Part shown: positions 8,288 to 15,577 of the stretch, piece by piece | Layout: each line of letters starts with the position of its first letter | Position numbering within the stretch: position 1 is the first letter of the stretch | Source of the DNA: Pseudomonas aeruginosa PAO1 | Lineage (GTDB): Bacteria; Pseudomonadota; Gammaproteobacteria; Pseudomonadales; Pseudomonadaceae | Strand: one strand, 5' to 3' | Length of the DNA: 64,000 bases | Assembly (NCBI RefSeq): GCF_000006765.1 | Contig: NC_002516.2 | Notes under the pieces: model-generated | What the model saw: only the letters and a program-made list of their open reading frames with translations | Told to the model about the DNA's origin: nothing | The model's database searches: none | Position numbers and translations under genes: made by a program

Positions 8288-10192
8288 GTGTTCCCTTGCC
8301 TACCCCGTTCGCTACTCGCCGGCGTCCTGCTGGCGAGCGCCCTGCCCGCTCACGCGGAGCTGCCCCACGCGCCCGCCTACATCGATGACAGCGCCTACCC
8401 GGCCGCGGCCCGCCAGCGCATCCTGCCACCGATGTTCGAGCAGAGGCTGGGCAGCCTGCGCTACCTCGCCAAGCCCGGCGACCCCTTGATCACCCAGGCC
8501 GAGAGCAGCGACTTCCAGCGTACCAGCGACTACCGCGAGACCCGCGCCTACCTGGAGAAACTGGTAGCCGCCTCCTCCGGCCGCATCGCCCTGCGCGAGT
8601 TGCCCGAGCGCAGCGCCGAGGGTCACCCGATGCTGCTGGTGACCGCCTCCACCGAGGCCGACAAGTCCGCCGCCGGCCTGAAGCGCTCCGCCAAGCCGAC
8701 CTTGCTGGTGGAAGCCGAGATCCATCCCGGCGAGGCCAACGGCAAGGACGCCATGTTCATGCTGCTGCGCGACATGAGCGCTGCCGACCGCCCGCTCGCC
8801 GGGCTGCTGGAGAAGATCAACCTGCTGTTCATCCCGGTGGTCAACGTCGACGGCGACCTGCGCCGCAGCGCCTACGGGCGGATCAACCAGAACGGCCCGC
8901 AGGAGACCGGCTGGCGGGTGAACGGCCGCAATCTCAATCTCAACCGCGACTTCACCAAGCTCGACAGCGCGGAGATCCGCAACGTCGCCTGGGTGTTCAA
9001 CCACTACGAGCTGAGCTTCTTCGCCGACACCCACTCCACCGACGGCGCCATGTATCCCTACGACAGCTCCTACTGCCACAACGGCAACGGCTGGTCACCG
9101 GCGAGCAGCGCCTGGATGGACCAGGTCATGCGCAAGCCGGTGTACCAGGCGCTGGAAAGCCTCGGGCACATGGTCCATGAATGCATCAGCCTGAACGACA
9201 ACCAGGATCCGACCCAGGGCTACTACCCCTACCGCACCGACCTGGCGCGCTTCTCCAACCAGTACGGCGACATCCGCAACGTGCCGTCGATCCTCATCGA
9301 GCAACACGCCCTGCATCCGTACAAGACCCAGGTGCTGGGCAACTACGTGATGCTCAAGGCGATGTTCGAGGTGATCGGCGAGCAGGCCGCCAGCCTGCGC
9401 CAGGCCATCGCCAGCGACCGCGAGCGCCTGCTGCGGCAGAAGGAGGTGATCCTCACCTGGAAGCCGGGCGAGGTCGCCGAGACGCCGTTCGTGGTGGGCG
9501 ACTACCGCTACGAGCAATCGCCGGTCACCGGAGCCCGCACCATCGTCTGGAGCAACCGGCCGAAGACGCTGAAACTGCCGGTGACCGACAACGGCGTACC
9601 CGACCTGGTGGTGCCGCGTCCCCAGCGTTTCATCGTCCCGGCGCAGTGGCACGAGGTGATCGCCCGGATCAAGGCCCATGGCATCCGCTATAGCACCCTC
9701 GAGCGTCCGACCGAAATCGCCGTGACCCTGTACCGCATGGACGACATCAAGCTCGCCGATGGCTTCGAACCGGATCGCGTGCAAGGCAACCGGATTCCGG
9801 GCTACGAAGGTCGCCTGCTGGTCAGCGGCACGCCGAAGCCGTTCCAGCGCCTGCTGACCTTCCCGGCCGGCTCGCTGTCGATCGACACCGCCCAGCCGCT
9901 GGGCGTCCTGGCCATCGACCTGCTGCAACCGCAGAGTCCGGATTCCTTCTGGTCCTGGGGCTTCTTCAATTCCACCCTGGTGGCCGCCGAGGAGCCGGAG
10001 GAATACGTGATGGAGCCGATGGCGCGCAAGATGCTGGCGGAAGACCCGGCGCTGAAGGCCGCCTTCGACAAACGCCTGCGCGAGGACAAGGCCTTCGCCG
10101 CCGATCCGCAGGCGCGCCTGCAATGGTTCTACCAGCGCACGCCGTTCTACGACGTGAACGCCTTCGTCTATCCGGTAGGAGTGGTGTTCTGA
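8288..10192 (+). CDS. Exported M14-family zinc carboxypeptidase
   Basis: GTG start after GGAGG (634 aa). Signal peptide, IHPGE (HxxE), NVDG, NLNR and DTHS motifs. Confidence 0.85.
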   Translation: MFPCLPRSLLAGVLLASALPAHAELPHAPAYIDDSAYPAAARQRILPPMFEQRLGSLRYLAKPGDPLITQAESSDFQRTSDYRETRAYLEKLVAASSGRIALRELPERSAEGHPMLLVTASTEADKSAAGLKRSAKPTLLVEAEIHPGEANGKDAMFMLLRDMSAADRPLAGLLEKINLLFIPVVNVDGDLRRSAYGRINQNGPQETGWRVNGRNLNLNRDFTKLDSAEIRNVAWVFNHYELSFFADTHSTDGAMYPYDSSYCHNGNGWSPASSAWMDQVMRKPVYQALESLGHMVHECISLNDNQDPTQGYYPYRTDLARFSNQYGDIRNVPSILIEQHALHPYKTQVLGNYVMLKAMFEVIGEQAASLRQAIASDRERLLRQKEVILTWKPGEVAETPFVVGDYRYEQSPVTGARTIVWSNRPKTLKLPVTDNGVPDLVVPRPQRFIVPAQWHEVIARIKAHGIRYSTLERPTEIAVTLYRMDDIKLADGFEPDRVQGNRIPGYEGRLLVSGTPKPFQRLLTFPAGSLSIDTAQPLGVLAIDLLQPQSPDSFWSWGFFNSTLVAAEEPEEYVMEPMARKMLAEDPALKAAFDKRLREDKAFAADPQARLQWFYQRTPFYDVNAFVYPVGVVF

Positions 10193-10210
10193 GGCCCACC
10201 TGGGGCTGAC

Positions 10211-10241
10211 GGCGGATAACGCTGCGCGTTATCCGCCCTAC
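10211..10241 (-). repeat. GTAG-type REP element
   Basis: Perfect 12-bp stem ggcggataacgc/gcgttatccgcc. On the minus strand it is headed by GTAG. Confidence 0.8.
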
Positions 10242-10265
10242 CGCTGGGCTTCGGGAGCCCCGTTG

Positions 10266-10300
10266 CCTCTCCCGCTTGCGGGAGAGGGCTGGGGAGAGGG
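10266..10300. repeat. cctctccc...gggagagg palindromic intergenic repeat
   Basis: 10-bp stem cctctcccgc-tt-gcgggagagg, followed by a second ggggagaggg arm. Confidence 0.65.
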
Positions 10301-10308
10301 AGCCGGTC

Positions 10309-10785
10309 TCAGGTACCGTCGGTGGGTGTGGGCAGGTTGCTTCTCGGCTTGCGCTTGCGCCTGGGTTTCGGTGGTTTTTCGGGTGGCGGCGACAACTCCC
10401 GCTTGCGCACCTTCTTGAGGATTTCCCGATGCTTCTCGCGCCAGGCCGGCACGTCGAGACCGTGGAGTTCGAGCAGCTCGGGGTTACGCTCCACCAGATA
10501 GACCGCCGCTTCCTGGGCGGCCTCGGCGATCTTCCAGGCGATCGACTGCGGTTCGATGCTGCCTTCATAGGCGATCCAGTCGCTGAACTCCGGGAAGGTC
10601 CCGCAGACCTTCTCGAAATCCTCGTCGTGCATGCGCTGCCGGCCACTCTCGATGTTCTCAAGGCGTTTGGGATCCATGCCGACCACCTCGGAAAACTGCG
10701 GTCGGTTCAACCCCGTCAGCCCGCGCAACCCGAACAGGCGCTCGCCGGCGCGAAACAGGCAGCGCTTCCTCACTACATAGACCAT
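10309..10785 (-). CDS. XRE-family HTH repressor-like protein, copy B
   Basis: Start re-picked at MVYVVRKR (158 aa). HTH LNRPQFSEVVGMDPKRLENIE; paralogue of 10823..11299. Confidence 0.8.
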   Translation of the reverse strand: MVYVVRKRCLFRAGERLFGLRGLTGLNRPQFSEVVGMDPKRLENIESGRQRMHDEDFEKVCGTFPEFSDWIAYEGSIEPQSIAWKIAEAAQEAAVYLVERNPELLELHGLDVPAWREKHREILKKVRKRELSPPPEKPPKPRRKRKPRSNLPTPTDGT

Positions 10786-10822
10786 GTACAGATACTTCCC
10801 TTCGTTTCTGGCGCGATGCGCC

Positions 10823-11299
10823 TCAGTCGCCCTTGCCGCTCGCGGGCGTTTTCCTCTTCCGCTGGCGCCTGGGTTCCGGCGGCTCTTCCAGGGGCGCCGG
10901 CTCCGCCTCCGGCGCCTGTTCCGCCGCCAGCAGCGCCTCGCGTATCTCGCGGTGGCGTTCGCGCCAGGCCTGCATGTCGATGCCGTGCTGCTCAAGCAGC
11001 ACCGGGTTGCGCTCCACCAGGTAGACCGCGGCCGCCTGCGCCGAGTCGGCGACCTTCCAGGCGATCGACTGCGGCTCGATGCTGCCTTCATAGGCGATCC
11101 AGTCGCTGAACTCCGGGAAGGTTCCGCAGACCTTCTCGAAGTCCTCGTCGTGCATGCGCTGCAGCTCGTTCTCGATGTTCTCCAGGCGCTTGGCCGTCAT
11201 CCCCACCAACTCGGCGAACTGCGGACGGCTCAAGCCCATCAGCTCGCGCAGGGCGCGCAAGCGCTTGCCAGCAGTGAACAAACGTCGATTCTTTACCAT
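10823..11299 (-). CDS. XRE-family HTH repressor-like protein, copy A
   Basis: 158 aa. Classic XRE N-terminus GKRLRALRELMGLSRPQFAELVGMTAKRLENIE. Confidence 0.88.
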   Translation of the reverse strand: MVKNRRLFTAGKRLRALRELMGLSRPQFAELVGMTAKRLENIENELQRMHDEDFEKVCGTFPEFSDWIAYEGSIEPQSIAWKVADSAQAAAVYLVERNPVLLEQHGIDMQAWRERHREIREALLAAEQAPEAEPAPLEEPPEPRRQRKRKTPASGKGD

Positions 11300-11328
11300 G
11301 TGTAGTCCGCGTCTGATGGTTCCCTATG

Positions 11329-11363
11329 CATATTGATTCACTAACTGTTAGTAGATCAATATG
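11329..11363. promoter_or_regulatory. 35-bp imperfect palindrome, candidate operator of the divergent switch
   Basis: CATATTGAT-TC-ACTAAC-T-GTTAGT-AG-ATCAATATG. 15 of 17 positions pair; 10/35 GC in a GC-rich window. Confidence 0.75.
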
Positions 11364-11424
11364 AATCCAAGCCCTCTAGACCGAGGGTTCCCCTCCAACA
11401 TCGGACCATGGTGCAGGACGCCTG

Positions 11425-11655
11425 ATGAAAGTGGAAGAACTCCCCCAAGAGGGTTTCGCCGAGTGCCCCCGCTATATAACCCTGATGCGTTTCGCCTTCC
11501 TGACCGGCCTCAGCGACCGGCCGGACCTGCTCTACGCCTGGATAGAGAGCGGCGACCTGCCGATGCGAACCTTCGGCACGCAACGCCTGGTGGATATGCA
11601 GAAGCTGCAAAAACGCATCGAGGAAGCAAAAAAAGGGGCCGATTCAACCGGGTGA
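11425..11655 (+). CDS. Small Cox/Xis-like winged-HTH DNA-binding protein
   Basis: 76 aa. ITLMRFAFLTG...YAWIESGDLP..FGTQRLVDM fits the excisionase/Cox/AlpA pattern. Divergent from the repressor pair. Confidence 0.7.
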   Translation: MKVEELPQEGFAECPRYITLMRFAFLTGLSDRPDLLYAWIESGDLPMRTFGTQRLVDMQKLQKRIEEAKKGADSTG

Positions 11656-11666
11656 ATCGGCCCTTT
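11628..11666 (-). terminator. Intrinsic terminator of the pel operon, embedded in the 3' end of the Xis-like gene
   Basis: Stem gggccgattca/tgaatcggccc with loop accggg. A7 at 11628-11634 gives a U7 tail for the minus-strand transcript. Confidence 0.8.
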
Positions 11667-11695
11667 CTGAAAGACCCTGCCGCCGGCGAAACCCC

Positions 11696-13066
11696 TCAGC
11701 GATTGAGCATGAAGGTCTCGTACTCCAGGTCGTCCAGCGCGGTGGTCAGGCGGTACAGCCCGACCAGCACGCAGACCAGCAGCGACAGGGTGAAGCCGTA
11801 GCCGAAGAAGCTCGGCCCGAGCAGCAGGCTGACGAAGGTCAGGGCGCCGTTGACGATCACGAACAGCACGCAGAGTTCGAGGACGATGCGGCGCTTGTCC
11901 AGGTAGAAGAAGACGTTGAGCAAGGCCATGAACACTACCTGGATGCTCACCCCGATCAGGTCGATGTAGAACAGCGGCAGGTAATAGCGGGAAATTCCCA
12001 GCCAGCCGAGCAGTTGCGGCGCCAGCAGGAACAGCAGGACCACCGCCAGCCCCTGCACCTTGCAGATTTCCAGCAGGCCCTGGCGGATGGCGAGGATCAT
12101 CTGCTCCTTGAGCAGGCCGATGTGCTGCAGGGTCTCTCCGCCGCGGATCGCCTCGTAGACCCGCTCGTACCACTCGGCGAAGTCGGTCTCGATGCGCACC
12201 AGGAACACCGCCATGCCGGGAATGATCGACAGGTAGGCGAGGAAGATCGGCAGGTCGTAGAGGATCGAGGCGCGCAGCGGGCCGATCACCAGGTCCGAGG
12301 TGGAGGGGTTGAACCAGAAGATGAACTTGTCGATCCAGATCCCCAGGTTGTAGCAGAGGCCGGTCAGCAGCAGGCTGACGAAGACCTGCCGGCGGTCGAG
12401 GAAGTCGAAGGCCACCATGCGCCTGGCCGGGTACTCGCGGAGGATGTCGTAGAGGAAGACGAACAGCAGGCTGGCGTGGCCGATCAGCAATGCCAGCAGC
12501 AGGCCGTCCATCTGCATGAAACGCAGCAGGTAGGCACAGGCGACCATCAGCGCGTAGCCGATGAACATCACCAGCAGGATGCGTTTGTAGGCCTTCATTC
12601 CCGACAGGAAGATGATCACCAGCCACAGGTTGCAGAGCACCACGAAGTTGGCCATCACCAGCAGGCGGTAGGCGAACGGCTCATCGAACAGGGTCGCCAG
12701 CAATATCGCCGAGAGCAGGCCCGCCGCCAACGTCACCAGCAACAGCACGCCCACCAGGTTGGGCAGGATCGCCTCGTGCTTGCGCTCGAACAGGCGATCG
12801 GAAATGAAGCGGGTGAAGAACAGTTGCAGTCCCCCGGTGAAGATCAGCGACAGCGCCATCAGGTAGGTCACCGTGATCAGGAACTGCCGGACCAGCACGT
12901 CCGGCACCACCACGCCGAGGCTCAGCACGCCGATCAGCATCACGCTGACGATCGACAGCACCCAGGGACCGGAGCTGATCAGCCCGGCGTAGAGGTAGGC
13001 GCGCAGGGTCGCCGTATAGGAATCGCGGGAAAGGATCTTCCGCAGTTCGAAGCCGATGCCGGCCAT
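11696..13066 (-). CDS. pelG: Pel polysaccharide inner-membrane transporter PelG
   Basis: Start MAGIGFELRK (456 aa), multi-pass membrane protein, last gene of the pel cluster. Confidence 0.95.
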   Translation of the reverse strand: MAGIGFELRKILSRDSYTATLRAYLYAGLISSGPWVLSIVSVMLIGVLSLGVVVPDVLVRQFLITVTYLMALSLIFTGGLQLFFTRFISDRLFERKHEAILPNLVGVLLLVTLAAGLLSAILLATLFDEPFAYRLLVMANFVVLCNLWLVIIFLSGMKAYKRILLVMFIGYALMVACAYLLRFMQMDGLLLALLIGHASLLFVFLYDILREYPARRMVAFDFLDRRQVFVSLLLTGLCYNLGIWIDKFIFWFNPSTSDLVIGPLRASILYDLPIFLAYLSIIPGMAVFLVRIETDFAEWYERVYEAIRGGETLQHIGLLKEQMILAIRQGLLEICKVQGLAVVLLFLLAPQLLGWLGISRYYLPLFYIDLIGVSIQVVFMALLNVFFYLDKRRIVLELCVLFVIVNGALTFVSLLLGPSFFGYGFTLSLLVCVLVGLYRLTTALDDLEYETFMLNR

Positions 13067-13067
13067 G

Positions 13068-14591
13068 TCATGCAATCTCCGTGGCTTCGCGGTACAGCCC
13101 GCGGTAACGTCCGAGCATCAGCGCCTCGGTGTAGTAGCGTTCGACCCGTTGCAGGCCGACCGCCTGGGCCGCCTGCCAGCGCTGCGGATTGCGCAGCAGG
13201 GCGAGGATCGCCCGCGAAGTGGCCTGCGGGTCGGCGATCGCCACCACCTCCCCGGCGCGACCCAGGGCGCGATCTTCGGCGTCGGCGCCTTCGATCAGTT
13301 CGCGGCAGGAGCCGACGTCGCTGCTCACCACCGGGGCGCCGGCAGCCCAGGCTTCGAGGATCACCAGCGGCTGCGCTTCGCTGATCGAGGTGAGGACCAT
13401 CAGGCCGAGTTGCGGCAGGACCTCGCCGATCCGACGGAAACCGAGGAACTTCACCTTGTCCTGCAGGCCGAGGCTGGCCACCAGGCTGCGGCATTCGCTG
13501 GCATAGTCCGGATCTTCCTCCTCCGGACCGACGATCCAGCCCTCCGCCTCCGGCATCGCGCTGACCACCCCGCGCATGGCGCGGATGAAGGTCTTCACGT
13601 CCTTGATCGGCACTACCCGGCCGACCAGCCCGACCACCGGCGGAATCCCCGGCGGCCGCCGTTCGAGGGCGCCGGTCCAGGCATCGAGGTCGATGCCGTT
13701 GGGGATCACCCGGGTGCGCCGTGGCTCGGCGCCATCGAGTACCTGGCGCTGGCGGTTGCCTTCGTAGAGGGCGACGATCGGATTGGCGGCGCGATAGGTG
13801 AGCAGGCCGACACGCTCGAAGAAGCGGATCCACAAGCGACGGATGTAGCTGACCTCGGCATCCAGTCCGGTACTCAGCTGCTCGTCGGGGTTCTCCGCGA
13901 TCCAGTTGGCCTGGGCCAGGTCGATCTTGCGCTCCTTGGTGTAGATGCCGTGCTCGCTGAGCAGGTAGCGGCAGCCCCAGCGACGTTGCAGGATGCAGCC
14001 CAGCAGGCCGGCGTAGCCGGTGGAGATCGAGTGCAGCATGCGCGCCCGCGGCATCCGCCGGGCCGCCTCGGCGAGCATGAACACCGGCGCCTGCATCGAG
14101 CGCAGGGTCCAGAAGTAATTGACGAAGGACGGATCGGTGCAATAGCGCTCGTAGCCTGCGGTGATCGCCTCCCAACTGGCCTTGCTGTGGAGAAAGTCCT
14201 CGCGGCCGATGCGGCCCTCGGCGAGCAGGTCGAGCAGCGCGTCGCCCTCCTCCACGTCCGGCGTCTCCGGGTAGTGGAAGAAACGGTGCAGATCGCGCAA
14301 CGCCTTTTCGGTCTCGCTACTGCCCTGTCGCGTCTGCGGGTTCGGCGAACTCCAGGCGGTTTCCAGGAAGTGTTCCTCGATGTGCAGCACATTGTCCGGG
14401 ATCGGGTAGTGGCGCTTGCCGTAGGCATCCTTCTGGCCGCCGATGAAGAACACCGAGAAGGTCAGGTCGGGGAGACCGAGGATCAACTGGTTGACCCAGC
14501 TGGAGACGCCGCCGCGGACATAGGGCCAGGTGCCCTCCAGCAGCAGGCAGACATCGGCGACGGGCGCCGTCGGAGCGGTGTGTTCGGTCAT
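13068..14591 (-). CDS. pelF: GT4 glycosyltransferase PelF
   Basis: 507 aa. EGTWPYVRGGVSSW start region and the EX7E motif EAQPLVILE. Confidence 0.96.
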   Translation of the reverse strand: MTEHTAPTAPVADVCLLLEGTWPYVRGGVSSWVNQLILGLPDLTFSVFFIGGQKDAYGKRHYPIPDNVLHIEEHFLETAWSSPNPQTRQGSSETEKALRDLHRFFHYPETPDVEEGDALLDLLAEGRIGREDFLHSKASWEAITAGYERYCTDPSFVNYFWTLRSMQAPVFMLAEAARRMPRARMLHSISTGYAGLLGCILQRRWGCRYLLSEHGIYTKERKIDLAQANWIAENPDEQLSTGLDAEVSYIRRLWIRFFERVGLLTYRAANPIVALYEGNRQRQVLDGAEPRRTRVIPNGIDLDAWTGALERRPPGIPPVVGLVGRVVPIKDVKTFIRAMRGVVSAMPEAEGWIVGPEEEDPDYASECRSLVASLGLQDKVKFLGFRRIGEVLPQLGLMVLTSISEAQPLVILEAWAAGAPVVSSDVGSCRELIEGADAEDRALGRAGEVVAIADPQATSRAILALLRNPQRWQAAQAVGLQRVERYYTEALMLGRYRGLYREATEIA

Positions 14592-15577
14592 GTCCAGTAT
14601 CTCGCCAGGGCCGCGAAGGGCGGCCGTTGCAGCATGTCGTCGGGCATTCCGGCGAGAAGCCGGGGGATGTCCCGGTAGCGCCGCTGGAAGAACGCCACCT
14701 CGGCGCGGAACGGCGCCAGCTGGGCACTATCGATTCCCGCCTCCTCGGCGGCCTGGAGGGCGCGTCCGGCATCCTCCAGGCGGCCTTGTTCGAGGGCGAT
14801 GCGCCCGGCCAGCAGATGCAGGTCGGCCGAGGGTGTGCCGCGCAGCGCCTGGTCGGTATGCTCGCGCGCCTGCTCGAGGATGTGCTCCAGCACGCTGCCC
14901 TGGGCCAACCCCAGGTAGGCCAGTTCCCAGTACCAGCGCGCCAGGGTTCCGTGCAGCGCGCCGCGTCGCGCCGGCGTGGCGCCGGCGAGGCGGCCGAGGG
15001 CGGCCTCGATGCGCTGGTTGATCCGGCTTTCCTTCTGGTCGAGCATCGAGTAGGCCAGCAGGCGGACGTCGTCGGCGGGGTCGCGCAGGGCCAGCTTGAG
15101 GATCGGGATCGCCTCCTTGCCGGGCATCCGCCGGGTGGCGAAGATCGCCGTGAGCCGCTGGTTCGGGTCCGGCGCATGGCGCAGGACGTCCTGCAGACCG
15201 CCGTCGCTGAACATCATGTCGAGGCGCTTTTCCTTCGGCCGGAACGGCAGCTCGGGGACGCCCATCGCCTGCCAGGCCTGCTCGCCACGCTGGCGCGGCA
15301 GGTACAGCGCCGGGAACACCGCCGCAGCGACGCCGACCGCTCCGATCAGCGGCACGAAGAAGGCCAGGCTGAAGAGGAACAGCGGGCTCCACGGCAGCGG
15401 GAACTTGTAGCGCCGCGGCAGCAGCAGCCATACGCCGACGCACAGCAGCGCGCTGCCCAGGCCGTGGGCGAACAGGTAGAGCGCCAGCGCCTGGCCGATC
15501 GGCAGGTCGGCGAAGACGCTCGCCCAACTGCTCAGCTCGAACAGGAAGGCGCCGCTAAATAGCCACTTGCTGATCAT
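14588..15577 (-). CDS. pelE: PelE (two TM helices, HEAT/TPR-like)
   Basis: 329 aa. DDVRLLAYSML motif and position in the operon. Confidence 0.93.
   Translation of the reverse strand: MISKWLFSGAFLFELSSWASVFADLPIGQALALYLFAHGLGSALLCVGVWLLLPRRYKFPLPWSPLFLFSLAFFVPLIGAVGVAAAVFPALYLPRQRGEQAWQAMGVPELPFRPKEKRLDMMFSDGGLQDVLRHAPDPNQRLTAIFATRRMPGKEAIPILKLALRDPADDVRLLAYSMLDQKESRINQRIEAALGRLAGATPARRGALHGTLARWYWELAYLGLAQGSVLEHILEQAREHTDQALRGTPSADLHLLAGRIALEQGRLEDAGRALQAAEEAGIDSAQLAPFRAEVAFFQRRYRDIPRLLAGMPDDMLQRPPFAALARYWT

Follow-up and report, generated by a model that had tools for sequence, protein, structure and literature searches.

A palindrome with a conserved core between an XRE-family repressor gene and a small winged-helix gene in Pseudomonas aeruginosa PAO1 is most likely the operator of the repressor

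The DNA analyzed here is a 64,000-nt (64-kb) stretch of the Pseudomonas aeruginosa PAO1 chromosome (contig NC_002516.2), hereafter the window, in which all positions are numbered. At 11329–11363, in the 125-bp spacer between two divergent genes, lies an AT-rich palindrome. The gene to its left (10823–11299, minus strand) encodes an XRE-family helix-turn-helix (HTH) repressor of 158 amino acids (PA3056, PA14_24580; Pfam HTH_31) and is followed by a tandem paralog (10309–10785, minus strand; PA3055, PA14_24590), also 158 amino acids long and with 70% protein identity. The gene to its right (11425–11655, plus strand) encodes a small winged-helix protein of 76 amino acids with a predicted excisionase/Cox/BldC-type fold (PA3057, PA14_24570); the paired gene names were taken from published tables. 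The palindrome is most likely the operator by which a dimer of the HTH repressor controls its own gene and the small Cox-like gene, and we consider it reasonably probable that it is the control center of a chromosomal two-regulator module, i.e., PA3056 and its paralog PA3055 divergent from the Cox-fold PA3057. A switch built from an HTH repressor gene preceded by a palindromic operator is of an ordinary kind; the locus that carries this one is unstudied.

The palindrome (CATATTGATTCACTAACTGTTAGTAGATCAATATG) is 35 nt long with 10 G+C. Its 17-nt arms, centered on T11346, are complementary at 15 of 17 positions, with outer stretches of 9 bp (CATATTGAT at 11329–11337 and ATCAATATG at 11355–11363), a 2-nt mismatch, and inner stretches of 6 bp; our recount reproduced these figures of a preliminary description of the locus. 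Pairing past the ends is slight (20-nt arms at 85% in the repeat search). The site appears to be a composite of a putative inner operator and promoter-like outer arms, in which the inner core (11338–11354, 17 bp, TCACTAAC-T-GTTAGTAG; family consensus TTACTAA-N3-TTAGTAA) is the predicted operator of the XRE dimer. Pairing of at least 15/17 with a loop of 0–5 nt occurs at three loci in the window, this one included; the other two (1708–1745, a strong palindrome with A and T runs at its flanks, and 11633–11666) are GC-rich bidirectional terminators. First-order Markov simulations give an expectation of 0.14 palindromes of such quality per 64 kb, and for a 125-bp spacer at the local composition the simulated frequency is about 5e-5. 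In the window, CATATTGAT is present only as the two palindrome arms and ACTAACNGTTAGT only in the palindrome, with up to two mismatches allowed, and arm-motif searches of the 64 kb found no further operator copies. The AT-rich palindrome is real and non-random.

An intrinsic terminator was considered and rejected: the stem is 29% GC, there is no T run, the terminator scan did not call it, and the true terminators of the window are unlike it. The earlier preference for a protein-binding DNA site over a terminator is thereby upheld, also by the conservation of the inner arms in the 44 related loci described below. Since this is locally the AT-richest stretch (47–49% GC vs. 67% across the window), one may also think of a chance palindrome or of a generic nucleoid-protein target (MvaT/MvaU or integration host factor) with no dedicated regulator; the simulated frequency for the spacer, together with the position-specific half-site conservation and symmetric co-variation in 45 loci, makes this extremely improbable. 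A short direct repeat, GGTTCCCT (11319–11326) and GGTTCCCCT (11387–11395), lies asymmetrically around the palindrome; it is partial in P. paraeruginosa, was seen in none of the other relatives, and may be chance.

The Pfam HTH_31 match of the PA3056-like repressor has an E-value of 3.2e-7 (31 bits against a cut-off of 27), and the protein is 97–99% identical to P. aeruginosa proteins. Its AlphaFold 2 model contains a five-helix HTH_3 domain, with helix 3 (residues 36–43, AKRLENIE) as the recognition helix. The Foldseek matches include SinR, DdrO, C.BclI, and P22 c2 (all at probability 1.0 and a root mean square deviation, rmsd, of 1.2–1.4 Å), as well as C.AhdI and P2 C; the C-terminal half (90 residues) returned no recognized fold match. 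The tandem duplication of the repressor gene (10309–11299) has a DNA period of 523 bp and 82% identity over 300 nt, and the recognition helix of PA3055, KRLENIE, is the same as in PA3056. The published 5' end of the PA3055-like copy (10852) falls within the 3' end of the upstream copy, and no operator-like site was found ahead of it.

The AlphaFold 2 model of the small protein (predicted local distance difference test score, 82) has the order strand-helix-helix-wing-helix. Its best geometric match in the PDB is P2 Cox (4lhf; probability 0.93, template modeling score 0.55, rmsd 2.6 Å over 59 columns, E-value 0.48), followed by the RdfS excisionase, BldC, and Pukovnik Xis. Because the E-values of these fold matches are all above 0.3, "Cox-like" is, as far as the model goes, a resemblance at the level of the fold and not a demonstrated family membership. 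Profile matches are weak, i.e., PHROG 575 "Cox-like" (E-value 0.029), HTH_17 (E-value 0.014, under the cut-off), and an excisionase profile; a profile search against PDB sequences gave spurious armadillo-repeat matches only.

A genome scan with the XRE protein alignment gave 44 related loci, almost all from Pseudomonas, or 45 with that of the window. The small protein gene is present and divergent from the XRE gene in 43 of the 44, and the sequence, position, and dyad symmetry of the inner arms are kept across all 44. A CTAA-N3-TTAG core is centered 44–58 nt upstream of the XRE start codon in nearly all 45 loci. The operator alignment was anchored on this core, and position ±6 lies outside the anchor. 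Position ±5 is an invariant C/G, and at ±6 the left side has A or C (24/21) and the right side T or G (27/18), the two being complementary in 42 of the 45 loci. By this symmetric switch between A:T and C:G the operators fall, at the level of sequence, into two classes, TTACTAA-N3-TTAGTAA and ATCCTAA-N3-TTAGGGT. At least two events are needed to place the switch on the XRE protein tree: the panipatensis/nitroreducens clade gained it at its base, and P. delhiensis and P. citronellolis LMG 18378 reverted. The gain coincides with a change of recognition-helix residue R38 to S/T/D (KR[LIV]ENIE to K[STD][VI]ENIE).

In one clade (L016, L022, L036, L040–L043), the XRE gene is preceded by a pair of operators spaced about 29 bp apart. 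The distal one, TTACTAA-N3-TTAGTRA, sits within the spacer of a TTGAC-16-TAAGCT/TAGAAT promoter and is asymmetric (ACTAA/CCTAA) in three cases; the proximal one, CTACTAAC-TG-GTAGTA, differs from it in spacing.

Published 5'-end maps of strain PA14 cover the locus. The PA14 gene lengths and spacings are those of the window and the coordinates convert exactly; the transfer is justified because the spacer between the small gene and the XRE gene is identical in eight P. aeruginosa genomes except for one single-nucleotide polymorphism outside the palindrome. For the same reason, variation within the P. aeruginosa population is uninformative about the site. Wurtzel et al. 2012 (PMC3460626, Table S3; conditions not broken down), who take as the transcription start site of a gene its most abundant reproducible 5' end, list PA14 2148059 (−), i.e., 11300 (+), for PA14_24570 with a leader of 125 nt, and PA14 2147958 (+), i.e., 11401 (−), for PA14_24580-24590 with a leader of 102 nt. 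The 11401 (−) end of the repressor is reproduced for PA14_24580 (102 nt; planktonic growth, 4 h and 12 h) in the independent dataset of Dötsch et al. 2012 (PMC3272035, Table S4), which has two further ends: PA14 2148034 (+), i.e., 11325 (−), for PA14_24580 (26 nt; 48-h biofilm only) and PA14 2148507 (+), i.e., 10852 (−), for PA14_24590 (67 nt; planktonic, 4 h). The supplementary file searched from the PAO1 differential RNA sequencing study of Gill et al. 2018 contains nothing on the locus.

The two main starts, 11300 (+) and 11401 (−), lie 29 and 38 nt outside the palindrome ends, face-to-face and 101 nt apart; therefore, both long leaders cross the palindrome. Each gene thus has a distal promoter within or against the other gene, and the convergent transcripts overlap by about 102 nt. 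The 11401 (−) promoter has a −10 element CACCAT (11413–11408), exactly 7 nt from the start, and a −35 element TTCCAC (11436–11431), which overlaps the ribosome-binding site, the start codon, and the first codons of the small gene; the GCACCAT block that holds the −10 is conserved in related loci retaining the small gene. The 11300 (+) promoter has its −35 TTGCCA (11265–11270) and a weak −10 ATTCTT (11288–11293), both within the first codons of the repressor. The 11325 (−) end is located 7 nt downstream of ATCAAT in the left arm, as a leftward promoter within the palindrome predicts.

The stretch ATGGTGCAGGA (11408–11424), upstream of the small gene, is conserved in related loci that retain this gene. 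On the plus strand it includes the Shine-Dalgarno sequence and a mini open reading frame, MVQDA-stop, with its stop overlapping the ATG of the small gene (TGATG); on the minus strand it carries the −10 CACCAT of the mapped distal promoter of the repressor. A GCAGGA upstream of the small gene resembles a GGA site of the RsmA/CsrA type. Both leaders also carry a GC-rich hairpin (11371–11389, CCCTC-TAGACC-GAGGG), located between palindrome and small gene. Analogous hairpins of other sequence occur in some clades and none occurs in the P. borbori group; a 5'-untranslated hairpin as a conserved family feature was rejected, since the fold is significant (z below −2) in 13 of 44 loci only.

The outer arms behave differently from the inner ones across the family. 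At positions 9–17 from the center, the family as a whole shows no more than chance pairing (0.09–0.67); only in P. aeruginosa is every position paired, and in P. paraeruginosa almost every one. The left arm reads a −35-like TTGAT(T) on the plus strand (11333–11338) and a −10-like ATCAAT/CAATAT on the minus strand; from the mapped 5' end at 11325, these are 7 and 5 nt upstream. The right arm reads a −35-like TTGATC on the minus strand (11359–11354) and, on the plus strand, the ATCAAT/CAATAT of a predicted mirror promoter with its start near 11367. The TTGAT assigned earlier as −35-like stands; for the −10-like element, given earlier as TATG, ATCAAT or CAATAT is the better reading. Of the 45 loci, 16 have a sigma70-like promoter of at least 8/12 that spans the operator and lies on the small-gene strand (e.g., TTGACA-17-TACAAA and TTGATA-16-TAGAAT); none has one on the repressor strand. 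Many class-A loci keep GTCAAT on the repressor-proximal side, where the small-gene strand reads TTGAC. The window scores 7/12 on both strands (TTGATT/TTGATC, 16–18 nt, ATCAAT/CAATAT) because the arms are symmetric. Since the promoters that span the operator in relatives lie on the small-gene strand and the arm symmetry is specific to one lineage, we infer that the outer arms are promoter hexamers rather than a second operator; the ancestral layout would be a small-gene promoter with the operator as its spacer, symmetrized in the P. aeruginosa lineage.

It had been proposed instead that the palindrome is a nested operator for two proteins, with the inner arms for the repressor dimer and the outer arms for the Cox-like protein (or the reverse), occluding two symmetric promoters. 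The palindrome is truly nested, with 9- and 6-bp arms split by the mismatch, symmetry of the outer arms is perfect in P. aeruginosa and almost perfect in P. paraeruginosa, and the small protein, as modeled, has a DNA-binding winged-helix fold. However, the other 43 loci are without outer-arm symmetry, yet 42 of them retain the small protein, and the outer arms are more simply explained as −35 and −10 hexamers. The sites bound by Cox/Apl/Xis-type proteins are direct repeats with a spacing of one helical turn (PMC7498355), and such repeats are absent from the 125-bp spacer of the window (0 helically phased 6-mer pairs vs. 2.4 expected). We therefore regard the two-protein arrangement as improbable, and the outer arms as a separate Cox-like site find no support. 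An excess of phased direct repeats was seen in a few relatives (L010, L017, and L020). What remains of the earlier shared-operator proposal for the divergent pair is partial: a shared operator is supported, the inner site being conserved and part of the control region, but the main starts lie outside the palindrome and the Cox-like outer site is unsupported. As for the claim that the palindrome overlaps both promoters, for which start-site mapping had been suggested as the check, the published PA14 maps place the dominant ends 29 and 38 nt outside, and the one biofilm-only end at 11325 (−) fits a promoter within the palindrome.

Taken with the comparative data, the following mechanism is suggested for the repressor-operator reading. 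An XRE dimer (PA3056, possibly with PA3055) would bind 11338–11354, with one recognition helix (AKRLENIE) per ACTAA half-site. The outer 9-bp arms would provide the −35 (TTGAT) and −10 (ATCAAT/CAATAT) elements of two mirror-image, fully overlapping promoters, whose 16–18-bp spacer would be the operator; because the operator is their spacer, the bound repressor would shut both. The promoter directed toward the small gene would be ancestral and the leftward one an addition of the P. aeruginosa lineage by symmetrization of the arms. For the distal transcripts, the bound repressor may act as a roadblock, and convergent transcription may add mutual interference, a geometry resembling that of the P2/186 switches. 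The XRE repressor likely autoregulates the locus.

Several observations weigh against this reading. The operator is centered at +47 of the 11300 start and +56 of the 11401 start, an unusual position for repression. No plus-strand start near 11367 is found in the published PA14 maps, made under standard growth conditions, but this does not exclude the mirror promoter because a repressed promoter would be invisible under these conditions. A consensus promoter scan of 10100–11800 gave no calls, and the hexamers of the palindrome are weak (7/12); because the scan called none, the hexamers were placed from the published 5' ends. The 11325 (−) end was mapped by a method in which primary and processed ends are not told apart (PMC3272035), and it sits 4 nt 3' of the hairpin in the longer transcript; it is either the start of a promoter within the palindrome or a processing site. 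The searched supplements of high-throughput SELEX (the systematic evolution of ligands through exponential enrichment) and chromatin immunoprecipitation sequencing atlases have no entry for PA3055–57. The correlation between recognition helix and operator is imperfect: KTV goes with ACTAA in L019/L024 and KTI with CCTAA in L031, which shows that residue 38 alone does not set operator specificity. Finally, both proteins co-vary with the operator class through shared descent alone.

This last point raises the alternative that the small winged-helix PA3057, rather than the XRE protein, is what binds the conserved inner site. The small protein and the site co-occur in 43 of 44 loci, and the small protein changes on the same tree branches as the operator class (CPRY with ACTAA, YY with mostly CCTAA); because of this, co-variation by itself cannot name the binder. 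Dimeric HTH_3/XRE proteins, among them SinR, P22 c2, and the C-proteins that the fold search returned, typically recognize dyad half-sites spaced by one helical turn, and the half-sites here are of this standard geometry, being 5–6 bp long and about 10 bp apart. The fixed distance of the site is to the XRE start and not to the small gene. In Azotobacter bryophylli (L044), the small gene is lost, while the XRE gene, the operator, and a surrounding TTGACC-17-TACAAC promoter are kept, the latter now driving a downstream "cargo" gene directly. In view of the dyad geometry and of L044, which keeps the site without the small gene, the XRE protein is favored as the binder, PA3057 at the inner site seems quite improbable, and the inner arms are predicted to be the XRE-dimer operator.

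The mapped leaders invite another alternative, in which the element acts at the RNA level: folded into a 35-nt hairpin in both mRNAs, or within a 102-nt sense/antisense duplex, it would set stability, processing, or translation, the 11325 end being a cleavage product. Given the mapped ends 11300 (+) and 11401 (−), transcripts of both strands include the palindrome, the hairpins fold at −12.1 and −11.8 kcal/mol (z −3.9 and −4.4), and the position of the 11325 end just beyond the stem, together with the mapping method, would suit cleavage. In contrast, what the family conserves is the sequence of a 5–6-bp half-site and not a stem, the conserved core alone folding at −0.1 kcal/mol; the extended stem is restricted to the P. 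aeruginosa lineage; the A:T/C:G switch falls into two discrete specificity classes that track the repressor recognition helix; and no Rfam match at E ≤ 1 was found in 10100–11800. Because the core folds weakly, the half-site sequence is conserved, and Rfam gave no match, an RNA hairpin cannot explain the family-wide pattern, and we judge an RNA-level element unlikely as the explanation. A role of the hairpin in P. aeruginosa is possible and could coexist with a DNA operator.

The module belongs to the core chromosome. A tblastn search of 50,697 phage records found no phage relatives of the repressor or the small protein, and in related species the module lies within a conserved gdhB...pyrD-rmf synteny; its neighbors in the window are pelG and a carboxypeptidase gene, with no integrase, att site, or phage genes. 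Because of the missing phage relatives and the conserved synteny, the module is syntenic core chromosome of P. aeruginosa and not a prophage remnant, and the Pf/P2 phage setting of the preliminary description has to be given up; a phage origin was rejected, the PHROG matches being generic. A type II toxin-antitoxin system (HipB/HigA-type) was also rejected: the sole co-transcribed gene encodes a paralogous HTH protein, no toxin partner is present, and the NCBIfam antitoxin matches are all far under the cut-off. So was a defense system or restriction-modification (R-M) controller, for which PADLOC gave generic HTH matches only. Literature text searches found neither binding data for nor a functional study of PA3055, PA3056, or PA3057; the sole mentions found were of PA3057, whose promoter served as a "random gene" control, and of PA3055, which a proteome table lists.

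On the right, the bidirectional GC-rich terminator at 11633–11666 (no strand) ends both the small gene and the convergent pel operon, whose pelG lies at 11696–13075 (minus strand). In another P. aeruginosa genome (CP083356.1, L054 589–1452), there is an indel near the start of the small gene; gene calling there gives a 287-amino acid PelG-like product up to the spacer and no small gene. An exopolysaccharide operon adjoins the module in two lineages, i.e., pel in the window (11696–15577; pelG, pelF, pelE...) and pgaABCD in P. citronellolis (L047 1–4450), which may be coincidence or a shared insertion hotspot. Elsewhere in the window, a perfect 12-bp inverted repeat, GGCGGATAACGC/GCGTTATCCGCC (10211–10237), directly 3' of the carboxypeptidase gene, is terminator-like.

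P. aeruginosa is without an extra downstream gene that many relatives carry. In 17 of the 44 related loci, a gene for a Cys-rich hypothetical protein of 84–111 amino acids (motif C-x-C-(R/x)-HP-x-LFEF-x-FYYRWLP) follows the small gene, usually with an ATGA start/stop overlap, and in L044 this "FYYRWLP" gene is directly divergent from the XRE gene. Three further loci (P. flavescens group) have a QslA-like protein (PF18226, E-value 1.3e-8) at the same place, with no homology found between the two types. The loci recorded for downstream genes are L002, L004–L015, L017, L021, L025, L028, L031, and L044; P. aeruginosa and 23 other loci have neither type.

A bolder reading, which we hold to be rather unlikely, is that the locus is a phage-independent bistable switch of the P2/186 style in the core chromosome of the P. 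aeruginosa group, with the XRE repressor (duplicated in P. aeruginosa) set against the Cox-fold protein, convergent distal promoters whose overlap would be 102 nt, and a mirror promoter pair within a single palindromic operator. If true, it would set a heritable on/off state of an output beside the pel biofilm operon, an output that in relatives would be the Cys-rich "FYYRWLP" protein or a QslA-like anti-activator. If switch-like, the pair would also be a simple model of convergent-promoter regulation outside phages and a candidate source of cell-to-cell heterogeneity next to an exopolysaccharide operon. Apart from this, essentially every P. aeruginosa genome keeps PA3055, PA3056, and PA3057, genes with no assigned function, and the locus, an old chromosomal feature of one Pseudomonas lineage, now gains a promoter map and a testable predicted operator, with a half-site consensus, a specificity position, and a candidate recognition residue.

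Among known systems, the C-Cox and CI-Apl switches of P2 and 186 share with the module face-to-face promoters, overlapping transcripts, regulatory DNA between the starts, and, going by the modeled small protein, a repressor paired with a Cox-fold protein. P2-like phages have this face-to-face layout with regulator-binding DNA between starts (PMC7498355, PMC1904263) that are 40–60 bp apart (PMC7498355), whereas those of the module are 101 nt apart. P2 C has its operators as direct repeats located over the lytic promoter (PMC1904268), in contrast to the single inverted repeat here, and unlike P2/186, the module has no integrase, no att site, no phage genes, and no phased direct repeats of the Cox-box kind. 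Because there is no phage context, the repeat is inverted and not direct, a Cox-box array is lacking, and the starts are 101 nt apart, the module is not a member of the P2/186 switch family. Should 11325 be a primary end and the mirror promoter be real, it would resemble the lambdoid CI/Cro pair, in which two divergent promoters share an operator; unlike CI/Cro, there is an experimental trace for one of the two inner starts only, and the second regulator, as modeled, has a Cox-type winged-helix fold and not a Cro-type fold.

The closest likeness is to the dimeric XRE/HTH_3 repressors (434/P22 c2, SinR, and the R-M C-proteins with their C-boxes). Shared with them are the five-helix HTH_3-type N-terminal domain, a short inverted-repeat site in the regulator's own control region, its 5–6-bp half-sites spaced by about one helical turn, the placement of this site within a promoter spacer in many members of the module family, and likely autoregulation. 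Unlike the 434/P22 type, P. aeruginosa has just one operator (one clade has two) and lacks an OR1-3 array, and unlike these systems in general, the module has no phage, R-M, or toxin partner and its main mapped starts lie outside the operator. Judged from sequence, the module seemingly behaves as ordinary XRE repressors with inverted-repeat operators do, and dimer binding and repression are predicted for it.

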